Source of the DNA: Penicillus capitatus
Taxonomy: Eukaryota; Plantae; Chlorophyta
Length of the DNA: 64,000 nucleotides
Assembly (NCBI GenBank): GCA_965649825.1
Contig: OZ287702.1
Span: forward strand, 1,044,786 to 1,108,785
Reading direction: 5' to 3'
Positions within the stretch are counted from its first letter, which is position 1. Every line of letters starts with the position of its first letter. Below, one piece after another: positions 1-64,000 of this stretch. Below the pieces are notes generated by a model. It had not been told where the DNA came from. It searched no databases and saw only the letters and a program-made list of their open reading frames with translations. The position numbers were made by a program, and so were the translations under genes.

Positions 1-2943
1 CCAGAGAAGTCACCAGTCCCTTCAGTGTCTCAAACAACAGTCGTGCCCACACCAAAGCCAGTGCTCAGTCATCCAAGTCTGCCAGTTCCGATGGTGACAA
101 GCGCCATGCCCCATGCACCATCACGTATCGCCGTTTCTGAACCTGTCCCGAAGCCACTGACGACTTCTGTCCCAGTACCTGTCACCGTTTCCGCAAAAGA
201 TGCTGTTCAAACTCCGATATCAGTAACTAGACCTGCAGCTCCAACAGTGCCTACTGCCACATCAGTACCAATTGTCCCAGTTCCGCGTCCTGTCATTACT
301 TCAGATGCTTTCCGACATCTCGTCGAAAGTGTCAAGCATGATGCATTAAGACCGCCGCCAGCTGCACCAGCAGCAACGGTTCCAGTTTCACGTGCAGTTG
401 TGACGCAAGATGCCAAGCAGCATCTCATTGATGCCGCCCCGAGGCCGCCATCCGCACCGACAGCAACTGCGACAGTTCCTCGTCCGATTGTGGTGCGCGA
501 TGCCAAACAGCATCTCATTGCTTCTGCTCTGAGACCGCTTTCTGCTTCTACAGCAGCAACGGTTCCAGTGCCGCATCCTGTCGTAACTCAAAATGCTATG
601 CGATCACTAAAGCCAGAATCCAAGAATGCCATGCCAGAATCCTTGCCAGTCGCTATGCTCAATGCCGCCATTCCAGATCAGCGTCCATTGCAGGACAGAT
701 TTCAGCAGTCTTCTTCAGTGATTAGGCCACCTGTTACAAGACCTCCAACGGTCTCCGGAACTGCTGGCCCAACACCTCATCCAATGATCCAGTCGAGTAC
801 CAGCGAATCACTTCCCAGCACCAGGGAAGAAAGTGGTCGCAGTCAAGCTCCCAGCGCATTGCCAATACGACTGTCATCTACTCAGGTGCCAGCCCCTGTA
901 AAAGACGCACTCGTCTCTTCTGTTCCTCTGACAGCCTATGTCCAACACCCATTTGGTACAGCAGATAACGCCAAGATGTCATCCAGCACTGAATCGGAGA
1001 CAGCAATGCAGATGCCGGAAATGGAGAGACCCAGTGCGATGCGACAACCCGTCCCCCTTGCAAATTTGGCTGCTCCTGTCACAACAACTGCCATTTCTGT
1101 ATCCTCGCCAGAACGTGTGATACCGACAGAAAAAGGAAACGCGCCAGTTGGTACGAATAGTCCCAATCTGGAGCCCAGTGAGACCTCGGTTCGCCAGATC
1201 CCTCCGCCCGCTCGCCAAAACTCAGCATCCAGCGCCATGACGATCGATTCTGTCCCGGTTTACATGGAGACGGAAAACCTGTCGGCGGAACCAGACACGC
1301 CCAACGGAGACAATGTGGTGGTGCCAATGGATGCATCGACCTCAGCTCTCTCTTCCAGATCTATCAGAGATAACCACTCACCGAGATTTCTTTCCAGAAG
1401 TTCAACGAGCATGGGCACTTCGATTCTGCCTGAACCTATTGTTGCTGAACACAGCACAAGACCTTCCTACTCTCGGCGAATGGCAAATGACAGAAACGTC
1501 ACGGGTTCTCCGATGGGAGAACGTCGAACCCCGTCCCGTTCGCCAAGACCTATGGGACCGAGCAGTTCCCGTGTTCCGATGCGAGGCCGCGGCCAGCAAC
1601 AGATTGCACGTGGGTGGGGAAACAGAATGCCATCTGCTGGCAGAGAAACGCAATATGGCACTGGCTACGGACTGCGGAGATCGAATGCCAGTCGGCCCGT
1701 TGACCCTCCGTCCCTGGATCCCTTTGTCAACGAACTGCTTAGACAGATCGTCCGAGCGCCATCGATGACAGATTCCGAACGGGTTTGGGAAGGGCTCATT
1801 GAAAGAGCACAAGCATATCTGAAAGAAGGGTTCTCAGGAGTGATGGAGTACACGATGACATCCACCTTCGGAACGTTATGGTTGGAGGCCATCAAGATCA
1901 AGCCGCCATGGCTGGCTAAAGATCTGCTAGAGCTTTTTACCTTTCATCGAAGAGTCCTCTTCGCCCAACTGGTCAGTCGACAACTGATGGAGCTTATTCA
2001 GCATTTCAAAGACTTTCTCAGAGATGTCCTCAAAGAACAGCAATCGGCTGAACACGCGCTTAAAGTCATCAGCCTGACGAAAGAAGTGTTTGGGATGTAT
2101 CGATTCGAGCGTCTAAAAGACATGCCAGGCCCAAGCATCGGACTGATCGTGGAGAATGCCATTACCTTTGACGAAGCCAACAGGGCATTGCAGAAAGGAA
2201 AGGCAGATGTTCAGTTACTCTTTGATGAATGTGTGCACGAAATCCAGTCTCGCATCGATGGAGTGCGCACTTCTCAACTTGTGCGCAGCTCTGGACGCGG
2301 AAGGATGAGTGTCCAAGGTCGTTCACCCGGAAGAGGGTACAGTGCACGGGCATCACGGCTAGATTCTACGCCGCCGGCGGGTAACAAATCGTCCATACAG
2401 GACGCGCATGCGGCTACACCTTCAAGTTCATCACAGCCGCCAGCGATAGGAAATCCAACAACATCTGCCGGAGGGGAAGCTATGGCCTGGATCCGAAATC
2501 TCATGATGACAGTGGCTGGTAATTCATCAAGTGGATATGAGATGCTGAAGTTTGTGCAGTCTATGGTGGAGATTCTGGTGCGTGATACACATACCTCTGC
2601 TTCTGTCATCGCTGCCAATCCCAACAGAGTCTCTGTCCTCAATCGCGTTCTTCAGACTGTTTACCAGATTCTTATGGCGTTGATCGAGATGCACCGCGAG
2701 AAGGAGGAGAAAGTCGACACCGTCCACACAGCCAAGACAGTCTTGACTGGAATGAAAGACTTTATCACGCTAGTGCGCCTGGATGCTCATCGCTTCTGCA
2801 GAAAACTGCAGATGCCAGACGAACGTTTCCTGGATGAGTTCAAAGGGAAGCTTACTGGAGGAAAAGAACACCCTCTCCTGCAGATGGTTTCAGTTTTTGA
2901 TCAGAATTACCGAGCCCTGTACAGCGTTGTGACGCAGAACTAG
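1..2943 (+). CDS. Large hypothetical protein, 5'-truncated; Pro/Thr/Ser-rich N-half with ~30-aa imperfect repeats, helical C-half
   Basis: Frame is open from base 1 (the ORF-track start at 25 is a GTG) to TAG at 2941-2943; more than 970 codons without a stop; no family recognised. Confidence 0.7.
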   Translation, partial: PEKSPVPSVSQTTVVPTPKPVLSHPSLPVPMVTSAMPHAPSRIAVSEPVPKPLTTSVPVPVTVSAKDAVQTPISVTRPAAPTVPTATSVPIVPVPRPVITSDAFRHLVESVKHDALRPPPAAPAATVPVSRAVVTQDAKQHLIDAAPRPPSAPTATATVPRPIVVRDAKQHLIASALRPLSASTAATVPVPHPVVTQNAMRSLKPESKNAMPESLPVAMLNAAIPDQRPLQDRFQQSSSVIRPPVTRPPTVSGTAGPTPHPMIQSSTSESLPSTREESGRSQAPSALPIRLSSTQVPAPVKDALVSSVPLTAYVQHPFGTADNAKMSSSTESETAMQMPEMERPSAMRQPVPLANLAAPVTTTAISVSSPERVIPTEKGNAPVGTNSPNLEPSETSVRQIPPPARQNSASSAMTIDSVPVYMETENLSAEPDTPNGDNVVVPMDASTSALSSRSIRDNHSPRFLSRSSTSMGTSILPEPIVAEHSTRPSYSRRMANDRNVTGSPMGERRTPSRSPRPMGPSSSRVPMRGRGQQQIARGWGNRMPSAGRETQYGTGYGLRRSNASRPVDPPSLDPFVNELLRQIVRAPSMTDSERVWEGLIERAQAYLKEGFSGVMEYTMTSTFGTLWLEAIKIKPPWLAKDLLELFTFHRRVLFAQLVSRQLMELIQHFKDFLRDVLKEQQSAEHALKVISLTKEVFGMYRFERLKDMPGPSIGLIVENAITFDEANRALQKGKADVQLLFDECVHEIQSRIDGVRTSQLVRSSGRGRMSVQGRSPGRGYSARASRLDSTPPAGNKSSIQDAHAATPSSSSQPPAIGNPTTSAGGEAMAWIRNLMMTVAGNSSSGYEMLKFVQSMVEILVRDTHTSASVIAANPNRVSVLNRVLQTVYQILMALIEMHREKEEKVDTVHTAKTVLTGMKDFITLVRLDAHRFCRKLQMPDERFLDEFKGKLTGGKEHPLLQMVSVFDQNYRALYSVVTQN

Positions 2944-7505: not shown

Positions 7506-8449
7506 TTAAAAAGGAAGCGCTCGGAATTCGTCTTCCTCTGGACCACCCAACGCTTTCCTCGCTTCCGTGAAGAAAGGCCACAGAGAAGCTATCACGATGG
7601 CCAGTGTCACTTCTCCGCCCACTTTAGATGTGTAGACTGTATGGAATAGACGTGAATGAGTGAGAAAGAGTGATGTTACGTATGGTACTGTTGTTGTTGA
7701 AGGGATCGGCCAGGTGGTCTTTGAAGCATGCGATGGGACCTTTGCCCGTCACGGCTGCTTGTGAGCAGAATCCCAGAAAGGCTAACATCGCCAATCGTCC
7801 GTTCTTCAGTTCCTTCACTTTCATTTCGTCCGATTTCATTCCGGCGGGATCGAAAGGAGCGAAACCGAGCAGACCACACTACGTCTCACACTTTTCACTC
7901 AATGCTACGACGAAGAGATCGCTCACTTCGCCCGTTGCTTTGAAGATTTGGTATCGCTTGTATTCGAGAGCACCCATGATCACGACCTCAAAGATGATCA
8001 GGATGCTCAACGGAAAGGGCAGATCCACCTGGACATGGTGTTGAGCAAGAATGTGTGAGATAATGTGTGACCTTAGCGCCTGCTTCCCAAAAGTTAGGCC
8101 CTCCTGCTGCTTCGACCAAGAGAATGCCGGGAACAGCCATCATCGCCCAACGACCATTCATCAACTCTGCCTCACGATACCACGGCAAAGCTTCTTTGTT
8201 GGCACCCAGAGACAGCGGATCAAACCCATAGTCTCCCGCTAAAGCAGAGGGGCTGCCCTCGAGAACAGCGTACATGTCGAGCGGCGCTTTACCCATGGAG
8301 CCATCGAGGTGGGCGGGAGGCTTTGCTCCTGGGTACCACAGGATACGATTACTGGCCCGAACGGAGACAGTTCGCGTCGCAGTCGAGGTCTTCGTGAACT
8401 TCGACACGAGCGAACGGCCCGAGAGAGACGTAGAGACGGAGGACATCAT
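7506..8449 (-). CDS. LHCA2: PSI light-harvesting chlorophyll a/b protein, algal Lhca2 type
   Basis: [59 protein letters not shown], plus a last exon [23 protein letters not shown] (extra C-terminal TM helix typical of chlorophyte Lhca2). Confidence 0.9.
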
Positions 8450-8615: not shown

Positions 8616-11431
8616 TCAGCCGGTATGGCGCACCCGGCGGTGAGGAATGATCTTCTTGAACTCTTCTTGCTGCTTCATAGCTTCGCAGATCTGCCAGATG
8701 TAGGCTTCGTATTTTGGCGTGCGTTTGCATGTAGCATGCAGAAAGGCCAATGAAGCCAAAGAAATCCTCGGAATCCTACAGGCTCTGCTCATTGGACACA
8801 CCATCAGAATAGAGAGAAAAAGTGTGACCTTGAGTTTCTCTTTTGAGCAGGGATCGTTCGGATCATCTTCTCTGCTGCAATGCTCCATTGGAGAAAGACT
8901 TCGATGGCCCAGTCGACTCGTTGCAGCGTACAGCTTGATTCGATGAGCAGTTCGAAGACTTGGCAGACGTCCTTTGCCAGAAGCATGATACCGGATGCGT
9001 TGTTTAGGATCGAAATCTGACGGAAGACGTACATGGCCGTCTGCAACTGACTCTTCTGCACTAGACCGACGATCAAGAAACCCAAAGACGTCACTTTGGG
9101 CAAGGCACTGTATGCAATACGCTCTTTGCGGCGCGAAACAGTCGGGTGCCACTCACGATTGATATGGGATGGGTCAATGGATGGCAGCCCTGCCCTTTCA
9201 AACATATTGTTGGTCACTCGAATCGCCGCCAGCACCTCTCCTGCTTTGCTCAATGACTTGATCAAGGCAGATGCTGCCTCCACACGCACAAAGTGCCGTC
9301 GAGCCGTCATCTCTTTGTAGAGAACGAAGGCGTGTTGACTGTCTGACTCACGGCAGCAAGCGAGTATCAAGCAATTGAGTGTTTCGGCGCTTGGCGCCAT
9401 CGATCGGTGTTTCATCATCCTCAACAGCACCAAAGATCGTGGCAGGTATTCGACGGCCAATGCTCTTGTCATAGAATTCATGGTCTCCTCGGCAATGTCG
9501 CCGTGTTTGCGAACAAGCACCTTGATGAGGTCAAGGGCATCGTCCAAACGGCCGACTTCCGTGCACATGCCGATCAAGACATTGTGGCATTGGTCAGATG
9601 GACTGACGCTGTATAGGCATGCTTCTCTATACAAGGCAAAGGCACCATCGACATTCTCTGTCGCTCGAAAGGCTTCGAACAGACAGCCATACGTCACAAC
9701 TGTCGGTCGTATCTTCTCCCGTTTGAGGCGCTGGAACAGATCGAAAGCCAGATTGAGATTGGGTTCGGAGCCGTCTTTGACACAGGTATCGATGGCCGAT
9801 GTGTAGCATTCCACTGTCGGCGCCAGTCCCTTCTCTCGCATCTCCTCCAGCAAGGTCATAGAACCTGCGACATCTCTTCGATCGGCACAATGGCTCAGCA
9901 GAATGGAGTAGGTCGTGCTGTCCATTGAACAGTCCGCCATCTGCATGTCTTTTAACACGTTCTGAATCTTAGGTGCGTCATCTGCCGTGCTCAGAGATGC
10001 GAGAACCGAGTTGTAGGTAATGCGATCGGGAGAGGGTCCGTGTTGCTGCATGGATGCATACGTGCCCAACGCTTCTCCTGCGTTTCTCGTTTCTGCATAG
10101 AAATGCAGCAAAGAGTTGAATGCCCAACGCATGGTGTCTTCTGCTGATGTCTTGTCTCTCATCGCCAGCCAACTCCCTTTCAATTCGTAAACAATCTGCG
10201 AAACAAATCGCCATCCCCTTTGTTTCAACGTCATTGCCCCACAGGCGTTGATGATCGCCGAGTAGACATATCCATTCGGTTCCACGCCATCACTCTTGAT
10301 CATTTTCCATACGTCCTTTGCTCTCTGCGGTATCTTCTGCCGACAACAGAACTTGATCAGTGCACAGTAGACTTTGTTTCCCGGACACGTCTCTTGACGA
10401 AATTCGCTGACGGTGGAGAAAACGAACTGCAGATGCTCGGCATCGAGTTTCTGCAGAGAGAAGGCGCTGATCATAGCACTCAGTATGTGTTGATTCATGG
10501 GAAGCTCGTGTTGCTTCATCGAAGAGATCATCTCGATCAACCACTCCACATCCACAGAGGCCGTCTTCTTTGTAATACAGTCGAAGAGAATGGTGAAGGT
10601 ATGTGGCATTGGCTTCAACTCTTTCGACTGCAGTTCGGTATAGAGTTCTCGAAATCTGTCAAAGTTCCCTCGATTGCCCCATGCACGCAGTATGGCAACG
10701 TAGGATATGGCATCCGCTTTCATCCCACTCCTCTTCAACTTTTCCCATATCTCTTCTGCCTTTCCAACATTGCCAGTGCGCGCATAAGCATCTATCATGG
10801 TATTGTAGACGTAGATACTGTCCTCCCCTGCTTCTACCGCCGTATCAAACACGGATCGCGCTTCTTTCAGTCGACCCAGTCTGCTGAGTGCAATGATGTG
10901 GGCATTGTATATATACGCATCTGGAGTATTCTCCGGACTCGCTTGCAGATCTATGAGATCGCAGATATACTGATACTGTCCCAGCCTCAGGCATTTTTTC
11001 AGTGCCGTACCAAACAGATATCGATTTGACGGGAATCGTCGAAAGAAGGCAAAGACGAGATCACTGCGTCGCATTTTGAGACACTCGTTCAGAAAGATCT
11101 TCGGTTTTTCATCCATCTCATGTATGGAAGACGAAGGATCCGGGGAATAGGGATCATCGATCTTCTGTCGCGAAGTCAAAAGCTCCAGCATTAAATTCCA
11201 TGACGCGTCCAGATTTCTCTCCGCCAGCGCCCTGTCCAATGGGTTTGTAGAAACATTGTATTGTCCTGGCTCCTCTTGAACAAGAGGCGATGCTTGATTA
11301 GAAAGACGACGATTTGAAAAGGATTGTCGCGTTCCCCTGCGAACAGGTCGCTCTCGGTAGCAGTAGAGCTGCTTCGACGCAACACGCATCCAACGATGCC
11401 CTTGCCATGACCCTAAACGCGAACGTTGCAT
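8616..11431 (-). CDS. Pentatricopeptide repeat (PPR) protein, organelle-targeted
   Basis: 875-aa ORF with many PPR motifs (PDAYIYNAHIIALSRLG, VYVYNTMIDAYARTG, PNGYVYSAIINACG, PTVVTYGCLFEAF); last intron ~8770-8815 joins the C-terminal exon ending at 8616. Confidence 0.9.
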
Positions 11432-11472
11432 GCTGTCCTCAAACGCACATCAATCCGTTCATCGAAAAACGA

Positions 11473-12674
11473 ATGCATCGCGTATGCATAACACGGACGC
11501 CTTTGCCAAGAACAACATGTAAACGGTACACGCGACACCACTGTCCCTGATTTGTGGCTATCAGGCGTCTCTCCACGGTCTATGCATCGACAACATGAGG
11601 TGGATGGATGTGAACGAAAGAGCATCGCGATCTGAGTTCTTTGACGGCCAAGGGTGTGCGCGTGCGTTATTTCGAGGCGTTTGAATTGGCGGGTCCGTTG
11701 AAAGAGACATCTCGTCCAGTCTTCTATACACATACACTCTGTCCTTATGCCCATCGCGTCTGGATGACATTGTTGGAGAAAGCAAGCGGCCACTGCTGTT
11801 CGCTCTGAACGTAAACGAAGGGACAGGAAGTGGATCACGATGTGGTGCATGTTGATTTGCGTGCAAAGCCTGCTTGGTATCGGAAGGTTCATCCAATGGG
11901 TTTGGTTCCGGCGCTCCAGCACCGAGAAGAGATGCACATAGAGAGTCTTGATATCTGCAAGTGGATGAAAAAGCGGATTACTGAGACGCGACAAGCTGTG
12001 ATGCTTCTGATATAGTTATATCGACGGGGCATTCGGTGGTCCGCCCTTAATGCCTTCGGATGAAGAACAGAGGAGAAGAACGCGTCATCTGCTCCAGAGA
12101 ACAGATGCGGTGAGGTCTTGCCTCTCGGAGCAAACGGTCGATGTCTGTGAACAGATCGTGCAAGATGGGCTGAGATGCGTCGGCGGTTCTGATGGACCAT
12201 GGGCCATCGGTGCCGATGCCAGCTTCAATCGAGAGGGCAGTGTGATCAACGAGCAACTGGGAAAACGGAGTCCGACAATGGCATCACACGATGGACCCTT
12301 TCTCACAGGCCCGACTGTGACAACGGTGAGGAACGAATGCTGTAACTCTTGCCTGAAGGTACCATTAGGCAGATCTGATGCTCTTCCCTTTTCTGTGGAG
12401 ATTTGTTTTGGTCGAAGAGCATCTCAGAAACCACTTCTTCGATTGGAGGAGTCCTATGGGGATTTGGCTGGTAAGAGAACAAAAACCTCGTTCCAGTGGA
12501 TATCATACGGGAGGGAGCATTGTATTTCTGCAGAGCACCATGTGTGGTCGCCTGTCGGGCAAAATCTCAAATCCAGACACATCACTGCTCGTCGCAGCAT
12601 ACAAGAAACATAAGAGATTGGATTTCTTTGACTACGAAACCTATCACATTGATCAGCTGCATCCGCACTTATGA
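11473..12674 (+). CDS. Glutathione S-transferase, Cys-type (lambda/omega-like), multi-exon
   Basis: TLCPYAHRVWMTLLEK, VDLRAKPAWYRKVHPMGLVPAL, ESLDIC, DLMLFPFLWRF; start exon uncertain. Confidence 0.8.
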
Positions 12675-29754: not shown

Positions 29755-31449
29755 GGTGTTTCCAATCGTCCTTTCTTAAGGTTTTGGTGGCGCTGACGAT
29801 GTTGGTGATGAAACCAACACGTTGAGCGACACGACAATTCTAGACATTCTTCTTTGAAAACGTAAACTCTGCTTCTTGTCATTCGATCGTCGTCTGTTCG
29901 AGTAAACGGAAGGAAAGAATGAACGCATAGTTGCTACGGATCGCTGCAGAGTTTTTGTAGTTCCTTTCGACGAAGATCTGCAGAGTTGGCTTCAGAGGGA
30001 CATGATCTCACGCGTTTTTCGTAGCCTTCTCAGACTTTCCTCCTCCAATCCCTGCTCTCCACGAGGCACTAGTCATCGCACTTCCTTCTCGCGTGAGGTG
30101 ACTGTACGTTTGATGCGATTGCCTTATTGTGTTTGCAGTAGTCGCTGGCCGATCGTCGACCTGATCGGCGCCAAGGTTTATATTGGCTGAAATCGATCCA
30201 CTCAGCTTAAATGCATGACTAGGGAGGGACAACATCGATCTAACTAATACCGTCGTAAAGACGGAAACGCGTTCACTATCACATGCGGCTCAACTGACTG
30301 CGACAAGGAATCGAAGGAAGCAAGGAATACGACGACACCGGGAACGATTGCTCCGAAGTCTCGATGAACCCACGACTCGAAAGACTCCACAAGACACACA
30401 AGCCGACGATGTGACTGGCAGCACCACATGTTTCCTGTCGATACTATTGAGCACTATGCCGAGAGAACCGGCGTGGTTTGCGATCTTCCTGCCTCGGTGC
30501 ACTTCGGCTTCGGCACATGGGATGGACATCCACGTTGCTCCTGTGTGGCAGGCAGGCGTTTGTGATCTCTTTCCAGAGACAGGTTCAGAGAACAGATGAC
30601 TAGACAGGGTGATTAAATCCTCCTCAGTCGAGTTTACACATTCTTGTGGTGCCTGTCAGAAATGAAATCGTCGACTGTTCACAGTCGATGGGAATTGAAC
30701 GGGCACAGCGCGATTGTGTCTGGAATGCATGCAGTTGATGATCTTCGAGTCTCCAATACTGGATATCTGCTGTCGCGTTGTTCAGGTCGCGCAATGTCTC
30801 GACAGTCGAGGTTTCGTGGAGAACGCCGAAGAAAACGATTCTTTGACCTCAGTGTCTCTCACTTCTGACGGTGCAAAATTTGTCGCTCTGTGAAGACAGA
30901 TTAGCAGCAATGCTCCTGTCTTGTCAGTCGCCACATCATGCAGCCAATGATGATTGTCGTCGAACGAAACGAATCATTCTGAAACGTTTGTTCAGACTTT
31001 CTCGTCCTCACGATGCGGCGATTTCTTTCACCTCTAAAACTCTGTCTGCTCTGCTGCGTGTTCGCTTATGGAGTCGGCCAGTTGTGTGCAGTTCAAAGGG
31101 CGCTGCAGCGCCCCCCAGACATCGCTTCTGCAGACGACGGTTTTCAATTGCTAGCTTCGTTACAACTTTTCAGCGGTGCTGTCTCCTGTTAGCCCAACTG
31201 GACGGTGAACTGCAATCCGTGTTGTCCGAAATACCTTCAGCTTTCTCCACTAAACGCAGTAAAAACGTAATGTTCGAATTCGCCTACCACCAGTCGGTGG
31301 CGAGGTTATTAACTAACTCGTCTTTTGTCTGAAGACGGTAAACGAAGCACACGCGCCTTTGCAAACTGGTGTGTTCGGTAGTAGAATTACCACAGGTTCG
31401 GTTTTTTGTTTCCTTCGCGGAGAATCCCTAGTCTTAGTGGTATTACGAC

Positions 31450-34400
31450 GTGTTAGGTTTTGAATGTGCGTTGACGCGAGGGGCTAAAGAAAGATATACG
31501 GCAGCCGACGGCAAAACGTGGCTCATCGACAGCACTGTCCTTAAAGAAGTCGACAGCGATTTGCAGATGATTGTTAACTGCACAGAGGAGGGAGATATTC
31601 TCTCATTCAAGACAACGGACGTTGTGCGCCCATCGTCGCGTATCACGATTCCGTGGCAACTGACACTCGCCACCCAAGCCGAAAACACTGAATTTCACGG
31701 CGGTCTGTACCCGATCGCAAAGACAAAGACAAGATTTACCTGTCCCCGAAAAAACTCTGGACTTTTTCGCGTAGAGTAAGACCACTTCGATCGGATGGTT
31801 AGTCATTCGCTTTTCGTCCGTAGGTCCATAAATGTCACTTTTGCCAATCTTGTCATCGAAAAGTGTACGTTCGATGGCGCAGATGGCGTCCAAGCAGTCA
31901 TTGACGTTGCAGAATGCCATTCTGAAAATGCTTACGGCATCGTAGCTCTGCACAGTGTTGTCTTTCGAGAAAACAGCCTAATTGCAGCTTCTGGACTTCG
32001 AATGTCATCCTCGTCCTGTTATGAAGTCGAGATGGTCGAAGTGGAGATCTCGGAAAACGTCTGCTCTGGCGAGGCCTGTGGAGTCCATCTAGCAAGGAAA
32101 AACAGACTAGAAAACTGCGTCGCTCACGGGAATAGAATAGCCAAAACGAACGAGCAGCAGTCGTCCTTGCTCTATGGAAAAATCTCATCCAACACCTCGA
32201 TCAAGGGATTCACGGCTAACGAGAATGATCTAACAATCATCAAGCTACAAGAAGGTTCACTTACAATGATGAATGCGTCATTCAGACAGAATCATCTCAG
32301 TACACGAATCACCGAAGCTACAAGAACCCACTATATTCATTTAAAAGATTCGGTAGCGGAGTTCAAAAACACAAAAGCGACCGCCAACAATGCACAAAAT
32401 TACGGAGGATTCTTGTTGGCGTTGAGGTCGACGTTGAAGCTGAACGAGACGAACGCGTCAAACAACAGCGCGAAGGAGGGCGGATTCCTAAATGCTCAAG
32501 ACTCAAACGTGACACTCGAGCGTACGAATGCAAGCGGCAACAGAGCACAAGAGTATGGCGGATTCTTGTTGGCGCTAAGGTCGACGCTGAAGCTGGACGA
32601 GACGAGAGCGGCAAACAACATCGCGAAGGAGGGCGGATTCATAAATGCTCAAGACTCAAACGTGACACTCGAGCGTACGAATGCAAGCGGCAACAGAGCA
32701 CAAGAGAATGGCGGATTCTTGTTTGCGCTGAGGTCGACGCTGAAGCTGAACGAACAAATGCGTGCAACAACAGCGCGAGGGAAGGCGGATTCTTGTTGGC
32801 AGCAGATTCGAACGTGACGCTCGAGCGTACGAATGCAAGCGGCAACAGAGCACAAGAGTATGGCGGATTCTTGTTGGCGTTGAGGTCGACGCTGTTGCTC
32901 GACGAGACGTCCGCGTCAAACAACAGCGCGAAGGAGGGCGGATTCCTAAATGCTCAAGACTCAAACGTGACGCTCGAACGTTCGAATGCAAGCGGCAACA
33001 GAGCACAAGAGTATGGCGGATTCTTGTTGGCGCTGAGGTCGACGCTGTTGCTCGAAGAGACGTCCGCGGCAAACAACAGCGCGATAGAGGGCGGATTCCT
33101 AAATGCTCAAGACTCAAACGTGACGCTCGAACGTTCGAATGCAAGCGGCAACAGAGCACAAAAGTATGGCGGATTCTTGTCGGCGCTGACGTCGGCGGTG
33201 AAGCTGAACGAGACAAATGCGTGCAACAACAGCGCGAGGGAAGGCGGATTCTTGTTGGCAGTAGATTCGAACGTGACGCTCGAGCGTTCGAATGCAAGCG
33301 GCAACAGAGCACAAGAGTATGGCGGATTCTTGTCGGCGCTGACGTCGGCGGTGAAGCTGAACGAGACGAATGCGTGCAACAACAGCGCGAGGGAAGGCGG
33401 ATTCTTGTTGGCAGCAGATTCGAACGTGACGCTCGAGCGTACGAATGCATGCGGCAACAGAGCACAAAAGTATGGCGGATTCTTGTCGGCGCTGACGTCG
33501 GCGGTGAAGCTGAACGAGACGAATGCGTGCAACAACAGCGCGAGGGAAGGCGGATTCTTGTTGGCAGCAGATTCGAACGTGACGCTCGAGCGTACGAATG
33601 CAAGCGGCAACAGAGCACAAGAGTATGGCGGATTCTTGTTTGCGCTGACGTCGGCGCTGAAGCTGAACAAGACGAATGCGTGCAACAACAGCGCGAGGGA
33701 AGGCGGATTCTTGTTGGCAGCAGATTCGAACGTGACGCTCGAGCGTACGAATGCAAGCGGCAACAGAGCACAAGAGTATGGCGGATTCTTGTTTGCGCTG
33801 AGGTCGACGCTGTTGCTCGACGAGACGTCCGCGGCAAACAACAGCGCGATAGAGGGCGGATTCCTAAATGCTCAAGACTCAAACGTGATGCTCGAACGTT
33901 CGAGTGCAAGCGGCAACAGAGCACAAGAGTATGGCGGATTCTTGTTGGCGCTGAGGTCGACGCTGTTGCTCGACGAGACGTCCGCGGCAAACAACAGCGC
34001 GATAGAGGGCGGATTCCTAAATGCTCAAGACTCAAACGTGACGCTCGAACGTTCGAGTGCAAGCGGCAACAGAGCACAAGAGTATGGCGGATTCTTGTTG
34101 GCGCTGAGGTCGACGCTGTTGCTCGACGAGACGTCCGCGGCAAACAACAGCGCGATAGAGGGCGGATTCCTAAATGCTCAAGACTCAAACGTGACGCTCG
34201 AACGTTCGAATGCAAGCGGCAACAGAGCACAAGAGTATGGCGGATTCTTGTCGTCGCTGACGTCGGCGGTGAAGCTGAACGAGACGAATGCGTGCAACAA
34301 CAGCGCGAAGGAGGGCGGATTCATAAATGCTCAAGACTCAAACGTGACACTCGAGCGTACGAATGCAAGCGGCAACAGCGCGCAAAAGTATGGCGGATTC

Positions 34401-37400
34401 TTGTTAGCGCTGAGGTCGACGCTGAAGCTGGACGAGACGAGAGCGGCAAACAACAGCGCGAGGGAAGGCGGATTCCTAAATGCTCAAGACTCAAACGTGA
34501 CGCTCGAGCGTACGAATGCAAGCGGCAACACTGCACAAGAGAATGGCGGATTCTTGTTGGCGTTGAGGTCGACGCTGTTGCTGGAAGAGACGAATGCGCG
34601 CACTAACAGCGCGAAGGAGGGAGGATTCATAAATGCTCAAGACTCAAACGTGACGCTCGAGCGTACGAATGCAAGCGGCAACAATGCACAAGACCGTGGA
34701 GGATTCTTGTTGGCGCTGAGGTCGACGCTGAAGCTGGACGAGACGAGAGCGGCAAACAACAGCGCGCGAGAGTATGGCGGATTCCTAAATGCTCAAGACT
34801 CAAACGTGACGCTCGAGCGTACGAATGCAAGCAGCAACGCTGCACAAGAGAATGGCGGATTCTTGTTGGCGTTGAGGTCGACGCTGTTGCTGGAAGAGAC
34901 GAATGCGCGCACTAACAGCGCGAAGGAGGGAGGATTCATAAATGCTCAAGACTCAAACGTGACGCTCGAGCGTACGAATGCAAGCGGTAACAATGCACAA
35001 GACCGTGGAGGATTCTTGTTGGCGCTGAGGTCGACGCTGAAGCTGGACGAGACGAGAGCGGCAAACAACAGCGCGGAAGCAGGAGGATTTATGAAGGCTC
35101 AAGATTCGAATGTGACACTCGAGCGGACGAGCGCGACCGCCAACAGCGCAGTGAAAGATGGCGGATCCATGTGCTTAGTAGAATCGAACGCGATTCTGAA
35201 GCACACGTTTGCGTCTAAAAACATCGCTCAAGAAAGCGGAGGGTTTATCTCGGCGCAAAATTCGACTATGAAGTTGGACGACACAAATGCAATCAACAAC
35301 AGCGCAACAGAGTGGGGAGGCTTCATACACGCGGCTAACTCTAAAGTAGCAATACAGCGCACTACTGCACTCGACAGCATTTCTAATTATGGAAGTGTTT
35401 TCGGGGCATTGAATTCATCTTTGGGCATCTCACAATCACAGTTCTTTCGCAACTCGGCGAAATCTTTTGGTGGTCTTGCCGCGGTTATCAAAAACAGCTC
35501 GATTTTCTTTATCGACTCTGCTATTAAACGCGCAAGGTCCAAAAACGGCGGAGCAATTTGGTTGGAGAAGTCTTGCTTGAGAGCGCACAACCTCTCCATT
35601 CTTCATTGCGAAGCAGACGAAAGCGGTGGTGGTGTGTATAGCATTGGGTCATCAACTGTCCTTTTTTCGGACTGTAAGCTTTATCACAACTCGGCAAAGA
35701 GAGGTAGAGGCGGCGCAATGTTTTTTGATGTTGATCTGGAACAGAATCTTGCTTTGCAATTACTCCAAAGCAGCATCAAGAACAACGTGGCAACGATGGG
35801 AGGTAAGCCCTCACCGTCTTTGTAAACACGACTGTCAACTATATGTGTATTCAGGTGGACTCTTCTTCGTCAGCGGCAAAAAAGAAGATGAATGCCTCGC
35901 CAACGGCACCCACTGTCCCTTCATGGCTTTGACAGAAACACAGTTTTCGAGCAATGAAGCCAGCGTTGCAGGAGGAGCAGTCTTCACTGGATACTTAGAA
36001 GCCATCCGCTTTAGTTGCACCAACGCTTCATCAGATGTCAATCTACGATTCTACGAGGAGATGGAGTGGAAACGCTTGAGGCAAGTTCAATCGGACAAGG
36101 ACATCTGCTCATCGTGGAAGGGCAATCGAGCCGAGGTTTACGGACAAAATATCGCGACGTATGCCGCAACTGCAGAGATGACGTTGCAAGATGCCAAAAG
36201 GTGTGCCTGCGTGAGCGGCAGAGAGAACTGTGTGATAGATGGATACCGTATTGGTACAGATCTTCCAACTGCAACAGTAAAGCTGTTAGATGAGCTCGGG
36301 CAAAAGCCTGCAATAAGCTACATCCTGGTGTATGCAAGCATGTCCTCACCGAATAGCGAATTCTTGTTTTGGCCGATTTCTCTGCCGATGGAGAATGGAT
36401 CCTGTTCTTTCCGATCCGTTAAAGGGTTTGTACCTCCGGGAGAGTACAATTTGACGGTCGAATTTGGCGAAAAAGAGATCGAGGACATCGGAATTACCGT
36501 GAAGGTTCACAATTGTTCTGTAGGCGAGTTTGTGTCGCCTGCTGGTTTTTGCGATAGCTGCAGCAGCACGACGTACAACTTCCTACTTTCAGCGAACGTT
36601 TGTCTACCCTGTCCGGAGAATGGGAACTGTGATCCCATGTGATCACACCAGAAGATGGCTACTGGCAGCAAATGCCGTGCTCAGAACGTCTTCACAGATG
36701 CCTACCGACCTCCGCCTGCGAATTCAAGGACCGCTCCCAAAACTTGAAGACCGTTGTTGAGAATGTAACAAGTTGTGATTTTGAGAGAGAATGGATTGAA
36801 GATTACACACAAGCTCAATGTGCTGAAGTAAGATCCATCCTCTTCTTCGGATGAATTAATCATCTTTCTGCCTGCTCCAAAGGGTTGTACGGGCCCTCTC
36901 TGTGGATCTTGCGAAGAAAACTTCGGCTCTGGTCTATCCTCGAAATGCGAAAGGTGTCTCAAGGGCTTCTTCAATGTGGGCTACATTCTGACGTCGGCGA
37001 TCCTTCTTTTGGTAATGACGAGCATCACGATCCATGGCACGGTCAGCGCCCTACGCAGAAACACCGAGCAGACTCATGAGCAAAGCGCACCGTCTTCATC
37101 GGCGGAAGTGCCCAGATCGCCACGCCTTGGGACGGAAGTGGGTGTAGACTGACATCATCAACTTCCACTTAATGAATGAGATGTAGGTCCAAGTCGCCGG
37201 AGTGCCTGCGTCCGAGAAAACTTTGGCTAAATGGAAGGCCGTCGAAATGTTCAAGGCACAAATCAATTCGTTTATCTCTAACTGAACTCGTCGTTTTGTA
37301 GATCACTCTAGGCTATGTCCAAACAACCGTTCTTCTAGCTTCTCTTGACGTGGGATGGGCGATTCCTGTGATCGTAATGGCAGCAGTGGCAGGCAAGGCT

Positions 37401-38518
37401 ACATTCTCGTGTCCCTCGGCTTATTCACTATTGTGCCGTTTCTAGAGTTGCTTGGCGGTCTCGCGTCTGATGGCATTCGACGCTCTGTCGTTTGTTTGTC
37501 TTCAAAACACCTGTCCTTGCAGCCAACGGCAATGGCACTCGTCGTCAGCGTCTGCGTTGTTCCCTGCGCCGTGTTTCTCTTCTGGACCGTGTTCTGGACA
37601 GCAAAATCAGCAAAATCCGGAAGCGACCGACTTCCCCGCTACCTGTCGAAGAGATGCTTGCTTTCGGCGATGGTCATTTGGTATGTCACCCTCGTCCCGG
37701 TGCTGAAGGCCGCACTAAGCGTCTTCTTGTGCATCAACGTGCACGATTCGACTGACTTGGCAAACGTCAACGTAACTCACATGTATTGGGCTGTCGACAC
37801 AAGCATGAGATGCTATGAAGGAGACCACAGCAAGCTCCTCTACGGAGTTGTCGTTGCGTTTGCGTGTCCAGTGTACGGCGGACTTCTCACACTCTTCGTC
37901 GTCTTCCTCAAAAGTGCGCCTCAACACCTCACCCACAAGGGCAGCTGGGCATACCAGACAACTGGATTCCTTTACCGCTCTTACAGAATGGATCATAGTC
38001 GATACTGGGAAGTCGCAGTCGTAATAAGAAAGATCGCTATCGCCTTTCTTGTATTTTGCGCCCATCTGTTCGACAGCGGATTACCGATCACCGGTGTCGC
38101 GTACATCATCATGCTTGCTATCTTGGCTCAGATTCTGGTGTTGCCGTACCGCGATGACTTTAAGGACCTCAATAGAATGGAACTGGCATCTCTTTTTGTA
38201 TCCGTGGCAACGGCGTTAGCAGCTTCCATGCTCAAAGACGAAGGCTACCCAGAAGACTTCACTCGCGAGCTGCTCACAGTCGCGTGCGCTTTGCTGAATG
38301 TCATTGCATTTATTGTTTTTGGTTTTTATATTCTCAAGTTTGCAGCTGAGTTCTTGAGATATAAGCTGATTGAGCGAGGGGAGCACAGTGCATCTGATGC
38401 TGGTATGTTTTGCATTCTGGCGCGCTGGATCAGCTACGAAGTCAAACATCTCATTAGTAAGATATATCCGACAACCGACCATCCAGAGATCGCCGAACAA
38501 TCGGCCATCGAGGCATAA
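31450..38518 (+). CDS. Giant Pmp-like (beta-helix GGx/N repeat) ectodomain + Cys-rich + multi-pass TM receptor-like protein; two 1-bp frameshifts (possible pseudogene or consensus errors)
   Basis: Repeated N-x-A-x-x-GG[FA] motifs, FSSNEASVAGGAVF, CxxC repeats (CDSCSSTTYNF, CLPCPENGNC, GPLCGSC), TM domain with GFLYRSY..YWEVAVVIRK and LPYR; colinear with the paralog at 58.5-64 kb; first exon not located. Confidence 0.8.
32353..35170 (+). repeat. Intragenic tandem array of ~18 units of 153 bp (51 aa = 26-aa A half + 25-aa B half)
   Basis: Near-identical units, e.g. NVTLERTNASGNRAQEYGGFLLALRS + TLLLDETSAANNSAIEGGFLNAQDS, counted in the translations. Confidence 0.97.
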
Positions 38519-48399: not shown

Positions 48400-49509
48400 A
48401 TGCCGACTAAGGGACACCTTTCGCAGCAACAAAACACAGACGCAGAACGAAACGTGCCGGCGGAGGTTCCACACGGCGCGGCCAATCGTCGGTTAGAGGA
48501 TCGCATCGCTATGTTTTTCCAAGGACTGGAGCATCCGACGGGTGCAACAAATACTGGAAGCGCGCATCAGACAACAGGCTTCTCCGCCATGGACGTCGCC
48601 GATCCGGAGCGGTTGCCGCGGAGTACGGCGGATCCGGTACAGACGCAGTCGCAAGTTTTCGTTCTCCTAAACAACGAAACGGAAGACGGAGTGCCGCGTC
48701 CTCCTTCAACGGACGTCGCCACGTCCCAACCACAGAGGTAAACGACGGACCCCTGCCCACCTTTGGTGACACTTCGGCGTAGACGGCGAGGAAAGCGCAT
48801 TCGCTGCGATGCATTACCGCATGAAGAGATTGTATCGAATCTGTCCGGTGCCTTCACACCATTGGATGTCAGGGAGATGTATGGTGGGAGATCACACCTG
48901 CATCCATTCGCCACAACACCCGTCACAACTTCACGTTTGACACAGCACAGTGAATCGGACATTCGCCAAGGAGCCTTAAGTGGCTGCGGCGGCGGTGGCG
49001 GCGGTGGCGGCGGTGGCGGCGTGACTGGGAGTGCTGCCTTTGCAATGCCATCTGTCTGTCCAGGTCAGACCATGATCGATGTGCGTGTTCTCAGTCACAT
49101 TCATCCGATGGATGTCACCGCATTGGCAACAACAGTATCCGGTGGAACGTCGCCCACCCCATTCCCTGGCGGTATCCAGCCGCCACCTAGGAACAGTCCT
49201 GAACAGACGAGCGACCCTTCGAAGATGAGTGCCATCGAAAAGGCGAAGCTCGATTGGGAAACGCACATCACTGTCATGGAACAGGTTCTTGCCGCCAACA
49301 GAGAACAGGGATTGCCAGAGCATTCGATCTCCTTGGACGCATTGCAGTTGCTGAGTCAAATGATCAGTAACCTCTATTCCCTCAATGCCAAGCTTCTGTA
49401 TGCCGAAACGCAACGCGTTCTCGACGAACACCGCCAGAATGCCAGACGCATTGACGATGTCTTCCAAGGGCTTGCAGGAGTAAAGAGACAGAAAGGGAAA
49501 GAAGATTAA
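48400..49509 (+). CDS. Diverged tandem paralog of the upstream bZIP gene without a recognisable bZIP, 2 exons
   Basis: Shares the N-terminal motif (LEDRIAMFFQGL vs LDLRIATFLAGI) and a C-terminal helical domain. Confidence 0.6.
48988..49020 (+). repeat. GGC/GGT trinucleotide tract (11 Gly)
   Basis: ggcggcggtggcggcggtggcggcggtggcggc. Confidence 0.9.
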
Positions 49510-58493: not shown

Positions 58494-61400
58494 CTATGGA
58501 TTAGTAGGCACACTGTGCACAGAAGCGTCGCTGGCATTGGTGTTACGTACATAGTCAAGAATAGCTTTAATGATAAACTGAATGACATAGTTGACGACAT
58601 AGACCTTTACAATGTGCCACGTGCCTCGATCAGCATCGTAAGGCACGTTCTCTGAATCGAGCACGGCCTTTAAGTACTTTGTTGAAAAGACGACAATAAA
58701 ATGCAGGAAAACGAAAAACAGCGCAAGATTGCCAACGATGATCCCAAGGGTTACCACAATGCGAATGGCATCAGACACGACATCATCGCCAAAGAACATA
58801 CTCGAAACGAAAGTGAGCAGCGAAACCAGCACCGAGAGATTTTCCAGTGCGTTCAAATCGTCAAACTCCTCACGATAAGGCCGGCAGAGCATCTGAAAGT
58901 AGAGGGCAGCTGATAGGACAAAAACAGCAAGGATGTGTTGGAGATTGGTGCCTAGAGGATAGGACAGAACAACGACTACAGTTAAAATCGCCTTCTTCAA
59001 GAGAATCACCGACTCCCAGAAGACAAACCTCTTCTGGTAGGAGCGATACATAAACCCAGAAACCTCATAAATCCATCCCTGTTTGTAGTCTTCTTGCACA
59101 TTCTTCATGACGAGGTAGGCGATCACTAGGGGGAATCCGAGAGTAAAGAGAAAGAGGAAAGGCCATCCCAGGACGAAGGCGAGGACAGCATGCGATTGTT
59201 GGTAGCAGTGGATGCTGGTGTCTGTCGCCCAGTAATCTGCAGTGCTATCCACTCCAATGATGGCTGAGCTGTGCACTTTGATGCAGGTGACGATCTTGAC
59301 GAGGGTCTTGGTCAACGAGACGTAGCTGATGTAGAAGACGGCCAAAAAACTCAACACAATTTTCTTGACAAGTTCCGTTGTCTCCGTTTTGTTTTTTGCT
59401 TTGTCTGTCATCCAGTAACTGGCGAAAACCAGTACTGCAGCGAGTGGGACACTGAAATCGATCAGCACACTGGCGATGGATCGTTCCATCGCGGCATTGG
59501 TTGGCACCAAACAGTCCACTGAATGGTGAATTGCCTCCGAAGTGACACCACCTGCAAACTCTGTAAAACGCCAAGTGCTCAGTATCTCATCCACTGTGTT
59601 CTCTAAGTCACCTGCTGTCTTGAACAGAACGATGACTGGCTTCGTCCATTCCACGTTGATCGAGATAGCGACAGCCGTCACTTGGAAGAAGTTCAAGGTG
59701 ATCTACAGAGACGATCGATATTGGTCCTCGCAGGAGAGATCATAGATTCCTTACTTTGAAAAGCTCGATCGCTTTCCACTGCGCGAGTTCGATATCTTTC
59801 GCCGTTTGATCTGGATCCGATCTGCTAACCGTCGATGGATGCGCGACGTCATTGGGTACCTCGCCAGTTAGATAACTTTCCATCATATGAGGCTGGGCGG
59901 GTGGCTGAGAGGATGGAGAAGTCGCCTGCTGGGCGTTAGAAATCACTGTCAAGGTGGAGACCAGACTGCCTCTCACGGTGATGCCCGTCAGTACCATCAG
60001 CACCAGAAAAGATAGGAACACAACGAGAACACTTGCAAACTTTGTGCTGCATTTCTCACAGAGGAAAGAGTGAAGCCGCCCGTAATGCGCTTGGCATGAG
60101 CCGCACAGCGGACCATCGTATCCCTGCAAACAGAAAGACGTGACGAGATGTCATCCAACAGAAGATGGTTGGTGCCTCTTTGCACTGAGCATGAGTGTAG
60201 GCCTCGGCATCTTCCTCGGCGAAATGACAACTCTCCAGATCTCTCGTTGCTTCTTCTAGGCGAGACGCACGCTCGTTGAAGTCGCACATCTCAGAGGAAA
60301 GACATTTCTGCAGGTGTTTGGAGCAAGGCGTCGGGTGCCAGTATCCTTTGTCTGGAAGAATGATATGCGATGCGCAGTTCCCATTATCGGGACAGGGATG
60401 ACACCCCGGTTCGTCTTCACTTCCCAGATTGTAAGTGTCAGATGTGCAGGGCTCACAGATCGTGCCATTGGCAGCAGCCACTTCCCCAATTGTGCACCCT
60501 CTGATGTGGACAAACATCGAAAAATGCGCAATCGATTGCTCGCTAAATACAATCGTGCATTCATAGACGCCCTCGATTCCAAATCCGACGACTCTGGAGA
60601 AGTTGCCGATGCCTGCCACCATGGCCACGTTGACAGATCCTGAGAAGAATCCCTTCGATGCTGACATCGATGCTTCAATGACTTCGGATTGCAGGCCCAC
60701 GGCAGGTCCTTGGCCCAATCCATCCACAGCCTCTAATTGAACGATGGGCAGAGGTGATCCGCTCGCATGGTCCATCACATAGTATGCATCGCCACTGGCG
60801 ATCTCGATCTCGGTTCCGTTAGCGAGAACGATGGTCTTCTTGACTTGGACTGCAAAGGTTCCTGCATTGGGGGCATATCTCCCAGCAATGTTGCCGGACC
60901 AAGTCTCGCAAACATCGTCCAATGATTGCAAGAAGTCCAAGGCCATGAGGTCCTCTCCTGTGTAGAGTTGATTTCTGTCTTCCCTCTCGACAGATGCGCA
61001 ACTCAATCGAATGGTTCGGATGTCTGAAGTCATCAGACCACCTCCGGCTACTGTCGCTTCATTGTGCTGGAAGATCGTCCCCGTGATCACGGCAAGGGAG
61101 CAGTTGTTGGTCGAGTTATTTGAGCAGTTGGTCTGAATAGGATCGTTCAGGAGAATCAGTCCACCTAGATGCAGGCAGATTGAACAGATAGATGTTGTCA
61201 GTGGCTGACAGATAACCACACCTCCCCATCTGGCTGTGTTGTGTCGGAACACATTCTGATCGAGTTGGAGAGCGATGGGTCGAAGACCAAAGGAATACAT
61301 CGAGACAGCACCACCTCTCAGTCCAGCTGAGTTGTTGACAAAAAAACAGTCGTTGCAAACAAGGGCGGATTGCCCCGGACTGTGAATGGCGCCGCCAAAC

Positions 61401-64000
61401 GAACTGGCTGTGCATTCTGAAAAATTGACATGCTCTGCTGTAATGGTCGATGTAAAAACATAGATCGCGCCTCCATCTTTTGCATGTGCGTTCGTCAGTG
61501 TCACATTGTAAAGGGCAACCATGGGAGGACCCAGTGCTGCTAAGAATCCCCCATTCTCACTAGCAGTGCCATTAACAAATGAAGAGTGGCTTATGTTTAG
61601 ATTTGCGACAAACGTGCTGAAGCCACCTCCCGAGCTTGCTCTATTTCCATTCATCCTGCAATTTGTGAAATGTACCGTCGATCCAGCAACATGTGCAACA
61701 CCACCAGAATATGAAGCTGCATTCTGATAGAACGATATGTTGGCAAATGTCCCAGTGACAGAGTGGCTGATGTGCATGGCACCTCCGTTCTCGGCACTGT
61801 TGTCTTGAAAGTCCGAATGTCGAATTTCAACCCGACTTCTTTGATCACAGTGTACGCCGCCACCACTGGTGGCCCTGTTTCCGGAAAGAAACATCCGGCT
61901 GCCGACTAAAGTCGCGGTTGCAGCGAGAATGGCGCCTCCTCTGCTATTGGCACGGTTTCTGAGAAAAGTGGAGTTGATGACGGTGGCAGCAGATGCAGCA
62001 TCCAGAGCGATCGCGCCTCCTTCTTCAGCACGGCAGCCAGTTATCGTGACATTTCGAAGCCAAAAGGAGACATTTCCAATGCCATTGAGGCTGCCTCCAT
62101 ATTGGCTGAATCCATCGGCGAAGAAAGAGTCTGTCAGACGCACGTGTCCATCTCTCGTGGCATAGATGGATCCACCAGCAAGAGCACGATTTCTGGAGAA
62201 ATTGCACAAGTGAAAGCTGGCGTTTGCTTGTTCGATGTAGATTGCTCCTCCAGGTCCTTCAGCTTCATTGGAAAGGAATTCGCAACGGGCGATTCTGGCA
62301 AGGGCGCTGTGATGGATCATTAAGGACCCGCCGCTGTACGCTTTGTTCCTGGAAAAGATGGAATCTGTGGCTTCCAATTGACTTTCACCCGCACACGCAA
62401 TTCCTCCGTAGCCCAGTTGTGTGGTGCTGTCAGAGATGTTGCTGATCTGGATGCGCAGGGTGCTGTTTTGCATGTAAATGCTGGCCCCGCTGTCTTGTGA
62501 ATTGCACCCGGTGAGAGAGGAATGGCGAATACTGACCACAGAGCTTCTACTGATTACCATGCATCCTCCAAGTACTGCAGAGCCGTTTGTGAAAGAAGAG
62601 TTCGAAATGACAATCTCGGAGAGCATAACGGAGAGATGACCACCATGGAGTGCTGTTCCCCCTGCAAAACGCGTCCGATTCAAGGAGAGGCTCCCTTCCT
62701 CCATGTAGATAGAACCGCCGGATTCAGAGGCTTGGTTTCGCCACAGAAGGCTGTGACTGATGTATCCACGGCTTTGGGATCGTATGTACAGAGCACCGCC
62801 AAACCTGGCAGCATTTCCCTCAAGGACGGAGTCTGAGATTTCCAGTCTGCTGTTATTGAAACAAGAGACAACGCCGCCGTTCTCCGCCCCTGTGTTGTTA
62901 GCTGCCAAGATGTCCTTGATGACAGTCGTCGAAGCTTTGCTGTAGATGACGTTTCCCTCACTCGCTGCAGTGTTAGAGACGAATGTGACATTTTCGAAGC
63001 CGATTGAAGAGTGGCTTTGCAGATGGATAGCGCCTCCGTCTTGTCTGGCCTTACAGAACTGCACCGATGCGTGTCGGACTTGAGAGCGGCCGTCGTTCTC
63101 GAGTGCGATGCATCCACCGAATTCCCCTGATCCCCTTACGAACACAGATCGACTGATGTTCGAGATGGACTCTGTCGTGGCAAGAAACCCTCCTCGGTTG
63201 GCCGAGCCGTTCTCGAATTGACAATGGCGAATCGTCATGTTGGAGCCTTCTGTGTAGACACTGCCTCCTTTGTCGACCGCAGAGTTGTTCAAGAAATCGA
63301 GACGCGTGGCGTAGACATTGGACTCGGAGGCAAAGAAAGCACCGCCGTCTCTAGAGGCATGGTTCGAGAGGAGCACGCAGTGGTGGAGAAAGGCAGCGCT
63401 GTTCATCTCCAGAAAAAGGACACCCCCTCTGGTCGCGGTGTTCTCTTCAAACGAGGTGTCAGACAGAGAGACGTTGGATGCTTCGATGTAAAGGGCAGCT
63501 CCTGATGGACCTCTGTTCTTCCGGAAGATGCTGCTGGATACAGTGACTGAGCTCCTCGTAAGATAAAGACAGGGACTCGGTTGGTCGCCGTCTTCTTGGA
63601 AACTGACAGAGTTCTTCTGAAAGCTCGATCTTGACAAGGACAGCGATGCATCAGACAGGTGAAACACGGTCAGCACGTTCCGCGATACGACCAGTCCTTC
63701 GATGTTTGTATGAGATCCAGGAGGAGCGTGGAAGAGGTGAGTGTTTCTGTCCCGGGGGTCTTCCAAGCGATTTCTGGAGACGGTACAGTTCTCCATTCGG
63801 TTCTCCTGAGACAGGAGTGCACCGCATGCTTGGCCTGAACAGGTATTGTTCTGATACCGAACTGAGATCATCTCCACCGCCGAACACGACGGAGCTTGCA
63901 CTTTGAGCCCTGTCTCAGCCGCCAATTGATTGTCTCTCACGATGATGCTGATCCATCGGACTGTGCCCTCCATTCCTCCAGATCTGCACGGTGCCACCTC
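58494..64000 (-). CDS. Second Pmp-like beta-helix + Cys-rich + multi-pass TM receptor-like protein, 5'-truncated by the window
   Basis: More than 1300-aa open frame with many FxxN/GGA(I) motifs, CxxC repeats, GYDGPLCGSC, then ~8-9 TM helices with GFMYRSY..FWESVILLKK and RPYR; frame open to base 64000. Confidence 0.88.

Follow-up and report, generated by a model that had tools for sequence, protein, structure and literature searches.

The array gene and its repeat units

The subject of this analysis is a gene with an internal tandem-repeat array, located in a stretch of 64,000 nucleotides (nt) from the green alga Penicillus capitatus (assembly GCA_965649825.1, contig OZ287702.1, positions 1,044,786 to 1,108,785 of the forward strand). 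The complete stretch is referred to as the window. Tandem Repeats Finder identified one array with a period of 153 bp (32385-35130, 17.9 copies, 89% matches), which is the only sizeable tandem repeat within the window. Using the recurrent GGF codons as unit borders, 18 head-to-tail units were counted between 32404 and 35159, in agreement with the mosaic array of approximately 18 units described in a reading that had been made from the sequence alone. The pieces of the array gene can be joined in frame over short GT..AG introns (31776-31823, 35803-35854 and 36829-36882). These introns are of the spliceosomal type and measure around 50 nt, and the gene is eukaryotic. A giant exon (31824-35802) comprises a non-repetitive N-terminal region, the array and a number of degenerate C-terminal rungs. 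The features at the locus, including a paralog near the end of the window, are the following:

31450-31775, plus strand: upstream coding exon, recognised as an open reading frame (ORF) in the sequence and spliced in frame over the 48-nt intron 31776-31823
31824-32403, plus strand: non-repetitive N-terminal ectodomain part of the predicted beta-helix, which aligns to homologs
32404-35159, plus strand: the array, 18 units of types K, L, C and E and a C/K hybrid
32753-32754, plus strand: 1-bp deletion in unit U3 (GAACGA-ACAAAT, compared with GAACGAGACGAAT in other units)
34392-35006, plus strand: higher-order duplication of two K+E double units of 306 and 309 bp, found by sequence comparison
35160-35802, plus strand: degenerate, non-amplified C-terminal rungs, followed by the 52-nt intron 35803-35854
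35855-36828, plus strand: exon encoding the last rungs together with the Cys-rich part of the ectodomain
36631-36632, plus strand: 1-bp deletion of the window allele relative to a second allele (GTG/ATCCC compared with GTGAATCCC)
36883-37143 (end approximate), plus strand: exon that closes the Cys-rich region and contains the first membrane helix (GYILTSAILLLVMTSITIHG); the 54-nt intron 36829-36882 precedes it
37463-38518, plus strand: C-terminal multi-helix membrane domain, about 350 aa long and containing 6-7 hydrophobic helices
58494-63997, minus strand: paralog with diverged rungs, matching Chlam_PMP (PF02415, E 9.9e-22), its N-terminus cut by the window end

The array consists of 36 half-units, in which segments of 75 nt (B) and 78 nt (A) alternate, and each 153-bp unit encodes 51 aa, corresponding to two rungs of the predicted beta-helix. 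One unit measures 152 bp (U3) and one 156 bp, the rest being 153 bp, and the reading frame is open across 15 units. The array thereby has the make-up of an intragenic tandem repeat: head-to-tail units, with a length that is a multiple of three, within an ORF. On the basis of pairwise differences the units could be sorted into four types:

Type K: U1, U2, U14, U16 and U18, with the motif TLKL[ND]ET[NR]A..
Type L: U4, U5 and U10-U12, with TLLLDETSAANNSAIE
Type C: U3 and U6-U9, with AVKLNETNACNNSARE; the A half that follows has the LLAADSN form
Type E: U15 and U17, with TLLLEETNARTNSAKE and one difference between the two units

The types occur in runs, in the order K K C / L L / C C C C / L L L / hybrid / K E K E K, where the hybrid (U13) is a C/K unit. 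U3 is a hybrid as well, its left end being of the K type and its right end of the C type. The four variants of the B half that the sequence-only reading had quoted are thus all present. The A half, which it had called almost constant, turned out to have two main forms (L/I-NAQDSN and LLAADSN), each of which is linked to the type of the B half. The proposed higher-order duplication of 306 bp is real: 34392-34697 and 34698-35006 are identical at 298 of 309 positions, and one of the two double units has a 3-bp insertion that adds a Tyr.

Both the hybrid units and the higher-order repeats are characteristics of exchange between units. Indeed, out of the 990 pairs that can be formed from the 45 informative sites among the units, 338 are incompatible with a single tree, and neighbouring sites show less incompatibility than distant ones. 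A pairwise homoplasy index (PHI)-type statistic amounted to 0.244, compared with 0.354 +/- 0.022 after permutation (p<0.0002, 5000 permutations), so that the units are mosaic in the statistical sense.

Predicted fold, relatives and family of the array protein

An AlphaFold model of U13-U18 together with the C-terminal rungs (pLDDT 96.6, pTM 0.91) has three strands per rung of 25/26 aa, and a Foldseek search with that model returned pertactin, Ag43, PL6 lyases and a phage tail protein. The array is thus predicted to build the rungs of a right-handed parallel beta-helix, with one rung per repeat of about 25 aa, which is the fold that had been suggested from the sequence. The translated array contains 54 N-x-S/T sequons in 919 aa, suggesting that the protein is probably a heavily N-glycosylated beta-helix; an extracellular orientation of the helix would be in line with this number.

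No Pfam match was obtained for the array protein, even at E<=1. The gene pieces as a whole have none at E<=0.01, and at E<=1 they yield only a sub-threshold match to Ephrin_rec_like, a weak hit in the Cys-rich exon that stays under the Pfam cut-off. The Pfam repeat model describes GGA[ILV] ... FxxN, whereas the array rungs read GGF...A..N and do not conform to it. The paralog does match PF02415. Its PMP rungs number around 30 and are fully diverged; it also has a Cys-rich region and a membrane-domain ORF of 400 aa, and it seems intact across 1313 aa (60056-63997, minus strand), with an N-terminus that runs past the window edge. A DNA-level tandem repeat is absent from 60056-63997, as had been stated in the sequence-only reading. 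BLASTP aligns the array protein to the paralog over 778 aa, rung by rung, at 25% identity (2e-38). In phmmer searches the more distant homologs carry PF02415 or PF13229, and P0007 and P0010 match the repeat models of these two families. Through the paralog, therefore, the array protein appears to be homologous, indirectly, to the PMP repeats of bona fide PF02415 proteins. The resemblance does not extend to the autotransporter beta-barrel or to a bacterial gene structure: the C-terminus is helical and multi-pass, and introns are present.

The remaining parts of the protein could be related to other members of the family. The segment 31824-32403 aligns with the N-termini of the homologs P0003, P0004, P0009 and P0029-31, and an ORF of 109 aa that is equivalent to the upstream exon is located just 5' of the homolog in a related locus (L001, see below). 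Tentatively, a signal-peptide exon may be present near 31000 (MRRFLSPLKLCLLCCVFAYG). For the membrane domain no matching Pfam family was found and the AlphaFold model is poor (pLDDT 53.7). At least 85 homologs of this domain (P0060-P0144) were retrieved, with 29-100% identity, all of them unnamed, without a Pfam domain and derived from ENA assemblies, where up to 8 or more are found per contig. Judged by these matches the array gene belongs to a large, lineage-specific and unnamed family. The literature searched offered nothing specific on eukaryotic or algal PMP-repeat receptors, and a family that combines a beta-helix, a Cys-rich region and a novel membrane domain and that has many paralogs is undescribed in those sources.

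Variation between alleles and among units

An exact look-up of the window ORFs in the protein collection gave just two matches, both to unrelated proteins. One N-terminal protein that is 97% identical (P0039) led to the same locus on the ENA contig ERZ25074695:ctg340592_344x_l (6.93 Mb; the locus is denoted L004), a contig that also encodes the exact PPR protein of the window. In the left flank (10.6 kb) the two loci are separated by 34 substitutions and a single 6-bp indel, in the right flank (9.6 kb) by 50 substitutions and 2 indels, a divergence of 0.3-0.5%. With flanks this near to identity, L004 must stem from the same species, either as a further haplotype or from a further individual.

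The array in L004 is about 1.2 kb shorter and comprises 20 half-units, or around 10 units, in another order. It has C-like and K-like units, at 0-5 nt from those of the window, and lacks units of the L and E types; at two places two B halves are adjacent. A higher-order duplication, of 687 bp, is found here too (10770-11303 and 11457-11994, 533 of 538 positions identical). A comparison of haplotypes had been proposed as a check on the array, and its outcome is that, provided both assemblies are correct, array length and order vary between haplotypes: 36 versus 20 half-units, as assembled, between flanks that are 99.5-99.7% identical.

Differences of this kind are also observed among relatives. 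The loci L001 (10001-13429) and L006 (5446-9408), which come from the same sample as L004 and have a lower coverage (20x and 16x), contain syntenic intact orthologs that are separated by an indel of 179 aa, or 7 rungs. Their DNA identity is 92-96%, and the rung zone is far less alike than the rest of the protein. Many near-identical rungs are found in the homologs P0030, P0031 and P0038 and none in P0029, P0033 and P0034. Contigs of related algae, labelled 344x, 34x, 20x and 16x, occur together in the ERZ25074695 sample, in which several related genomes or strains therefore seem to coexist.

Residues that vary and residues that are fixed could be clearly distinguished among the half-units, confirming the fixed scaffold and clustered changes reported earlier. 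The B half is variable at residues 5, 8, 10, 12, 14, 17, 19 and 24 and invariant at G1, G2, F3, L4, L7, S9, L13, T16, A18, N21 and A23; the A half varies at 4, 5, 7, 16, 22, 25 and 26. The scaffold that never varies consists of G1, G2, F3, S9, L13, A18, N21 and A23. Invariant and variable residues alternate in the B half, and similarly in the A half. As this alternation fits the in/out pattern of beta-helix strands, the variable side chains most likely point outward, into the solvent. The variable positions are found in all three strands of the rung and do not appear to be confined to one face, and some of the changes create or remove N-x-S/T sequons.

When the unit pairs are summed, the ratio of non-synonymous to synonymous differences (pN/pS) amounts to 0.80 for the B halves and 0.46 for the A halves. 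The private mutations of near-identical units comprise 6 synonymous and 21 non-synonymous changes, and the recent within-type changes are thus at about the neutral ratio. Between the alleles the corresponding ratio (dN/dS), for which the counts are small, is 1.47 for the N-terminal region (1 synonymous and 5 non-synonymous changes), 0.71 for the C-terminal rungs, 0.49 and 0.16 for the two segments of the Cys-rich exon that flank the frameshift at 36631, and 0.15 for the membrane domain (2 synonymous and 1 non-synonymous). In the Cys-rich exon dS reaches 0.05-0.08, far above the flanks. With 28 substitutions, the interval 36001-37000, in this exon, diverges more than any other part of the 44 kb compared; the other 1-kb bins mostly have 0-14, and one has 23. 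The two copies may have coalesced longer ago here, balancing selection may be acting, or a paralog may have donated sequence by conversion.

As assembled, both alleles have a disrupted reading frame. In the window, the deletion in U3, which adds to the earlier description of the array, ends the upstream frame at the stop 32815-32817, and the deletion at 36631 leads to a stop at 36640-36642. The latter lies outside the repeat, in a very clean alignment, which argues for a window allele, at least, that is truly broken. L004 has indels of +7 and +4 in two B halves (10650-10665 and 11655-11665). All three in-array indels, one in the window and two in L004, fall within about 10 nt, at codons 15-17 (E15-T16-N17) of the B half. 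Nowhere is the B half more variable than here, and two of the three indels coincide with a switch of unit type. They could have arisen where template switching or heteroduplex repair joined sequences imprecisely. The motif AACGAAC is found only in half-unit 5 of the window and half-unit 1 of L004, both of which are frameshifted. An ancestral frameshift common to both alleles was considered on account of this motif, but a 7-nt duplication explains the L004 copy equally well. An internal GT..AG intron that would skip the U3 frameshift was considered and rejected: each unit contains the same 41/42-nt GT..AG segment, which falls short of the 48-54 nt of the introns in this gene, so that it does not count as evidence.

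Some further observations concern the surroundings of the array gene. Haplotype divergence is patchy (window 1-44719 compared with L002/L004): stretches of 6-8 kb without differences (7-13, 15-23 and 39-44 kb) are interspersed with patches that diverge by 0.5-2.8%. At 48982-49021, within the ORF 48763-49509, there is a (GGC)n / GGCGGCGGT microsatellite. The ORF 25-2943 (plus strand) encodes 972 aa, of which the N-terminal third is rich in Pro, Val and Thr and has a degenerate motif of about 30 aa (..VPRP.V..DAKQHLI..). An intron-split gene for a light-harvesting chlorophyll a/b protein is located at 7624-8449 on the minus strand; among PDB entries it is closest to LHCI polyproteins of Euglena gracilis and to green-algal Lhca2, which places the host among algae with green plastids.

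Proposed origin and significance of the array

The feature would be explained as a coding minisatellite in a large exon of a eukaryotic gene, in which a few older, diverged rung pairs were recently amplified. The units would then have been reshuffled by misaligned recombination (unequal crossover, gene conversion, replication slippage or template switching), with the outcome that rung number and order differ between chromosomes, and the same process would act in other members of the family. We consider it reasonably probable that the array is such a minisatellite with recent amplification and misaligned exchange, that the copy in the window is disrupted, and that no programmed diversification is involved. 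The earlier proposal that unequal crossover or conversion yields length and surface variation is in part borne out by this, namely by the mosaic units and by the counts of 18 and about 10 units; the mechanism of recombination among the units, the extracellular orientation and the outward position of the variable residues are inferred. Because both alleles are frameshifted and the recent substitutions look neutral, the window copy is most probably a null allele, or else a pseudogene of recent origin, in a family that is functional otherwise. The neutral appearance of recent change would follow from the process now running in seemingly disabled alleles.

Several observations weigh against this explanation. 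Both arrays and their frameshifts are read from assembled sequences, and the in-array frameshifts cluster as a polishing error could make them do; they could equally be consensus or polishing errors in the repeat. The membrane domain and the Cys-rich exon still look constrained by their dN/dS, on few counts, and are therefore a poor fit to an old pseudogene. Finally, the ectodomain is the most polymorphic part of the 44 kb, which could mean balancing or diversifying selection.

The last point leads to the alternative that the gene encodes an adaptive, hypervariable recognition protein, in which the shuffling of rungs is kept by diversifying or balancing selection on a glycosylated binding surface (for recognition of, for example, a mate, self, a symbiont or a pathogen) and the frameshifts are assembly errors or segregating nulls. 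It would account for alleles that differ strongly in rung number and type between near-identical flanks, for variable residues at positions taken as outward with sequons gained and lost, and for the peak of 28 substitutions per kb in the ectodomain; the large size of the lineage-specific family, with 85 homologs of the membrane domain, and the whole-rung differences between intact relatives point the same way. A function in recognition is itself a proposal from sequence, however, and the pN/pS below 1 among units, the neutral ratio of recent changes, the spread of variable positions over all three strands and the frameshifts in both alleles argue against selection of this type, which makes this alternative unlikely. 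A somewhat smaller chance is given to an assembly artefact, in which the number and order of units and the in-array frameshifts would result from collapse, expansion or mis-polishing of a repeat that is 90-99% identical. The position of the three in-array frameshifts at the most type-divergent site looks as if reads of different units had been piled up, and L004 stems from a metagenome-style assembly, going by its contig names (ctg340592_344x_l). The flanks, however, are very clean, with only 3 indels in 20 kb, one of which is the frameshift at 36631 outside the repeat; an array of 2.8 kb is short relative to long reads, and the other assembly carries a coverage label of 344x. Given these flanks, and the internally coherent higher-order structure of both arrays, an artefact is the less likely explanation.

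The sequence-only reading had compared the array to a combinatorial variable receptor and regarded it as the best candidate for an undescribed system, and this suggestion was not supported: besides the selection measures, the frameshifts and the spread of variable positions over all three strands, a search for donor copies found no unit-like cassettes outside the array in the 64-kb window (the rest of the genome was outside that search). Nor were unit-like sequences found in the related loci that were fetched, and a scan for the units in JGI metagenomes gave 0 matches. A programmed, possibly somatic, assembly of cassettes as in lamprey VLR, or another dedicated diversifier, is therefore highly improbable; the mosaic look of the units is its sole support, whereas both alleles have a complete germline tandem array and exchange among the resident units accounts for the variation. 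With lamprey VLR and sea-urchin Sp185/333, which are combinatorially diversified immune-type receptors, the array shares a mosaic of short modules whose content varies from allele to allele; frameshifts are common in Sp185/333 genes as well. The array differs from these systems in that the window has no donor cassettes, that nothing observed points to somatic assembly or an immune context and that the variable residues are spread over all three strands, and by none of the criteria tested is the gene VLR-like.

A closer parallel to the working of the proposed minisatellite is found in coding tandem repeats of fungal adhesins and many other surface proteins, where unequal exchange is a well-known and reviewed phenomenon (PMC3899988). 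The yeast FLO/ALS/EPA adhesins (PMC3899988) have, as the array gene does, in-frame head-to-tail repeats in the extracellular part; copy number varies between alleles through recombination or slippage, and family members amplify their repeats independently. The array encodes structured rung pairs and the gene a multi-pass membrane domain, whereas the adhesins have a Ser/Thr-rich stalk and a glycosylphosphatidylinositol (GPI) anchor. With the Chlamydia Pmp proteins (PF02415; PMC11166332, PMC10715098) the family shares rungs of about 25 aa, a GG-hydrophobic motif, a conserved Asn and a long surface beta-helix. In contrast to these, the array gene is eukaryotic and has introns, lacks the autotransporter beta-barrel and has a Cys-rich and a helical membrane domain added; its rungs deviate from the Pmp motif (GGF...A..N instead of GGA[ILV]/FxxN) and remain below the Pfam threshold, which the paralog exceeds. 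The autotransporter adhesins pertactin and Ag43 and the Pmp-like proteins of trichomonads, for whose surface proteins PF02415 has been mentioned (PMC9203502), have the same predicted fold and are surface-exposed, repetitive and variable. Past the repeat motif no sequence kinship with the array gene could be detected, and the anchoring is different. Taken with the known dynamics of tandem repeats, the locus looks like a case of ordinary but very active repeat instability.

A more far-reaching possibility, to which we attach little weight, is that a large undescribed receptor family of the green-algal lineage uses its rungs as exchangeable modules, with shuffling and frequent nulls under selection for variation of a glycosylated recognition surface between individuals. 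If true, it would be a germline, population-level analogue of modular variable receptors. The locus itself illustrates how fast an ectodomain of structured repeats can change: 18 versus about 10 rung pairs, with flanks that are less than 0.5% apart. The locus also draws attention to a large, unnamed family of green-type algae that combines a PMP-like beta-helix, a Cys-rich region and a novel multi-pass domain. Should some of its members function in recognition or adhesion, differences in the number and type of rungs would offer them an evident way to vary their surface, and it is the family itself that most deserves to be followed up.

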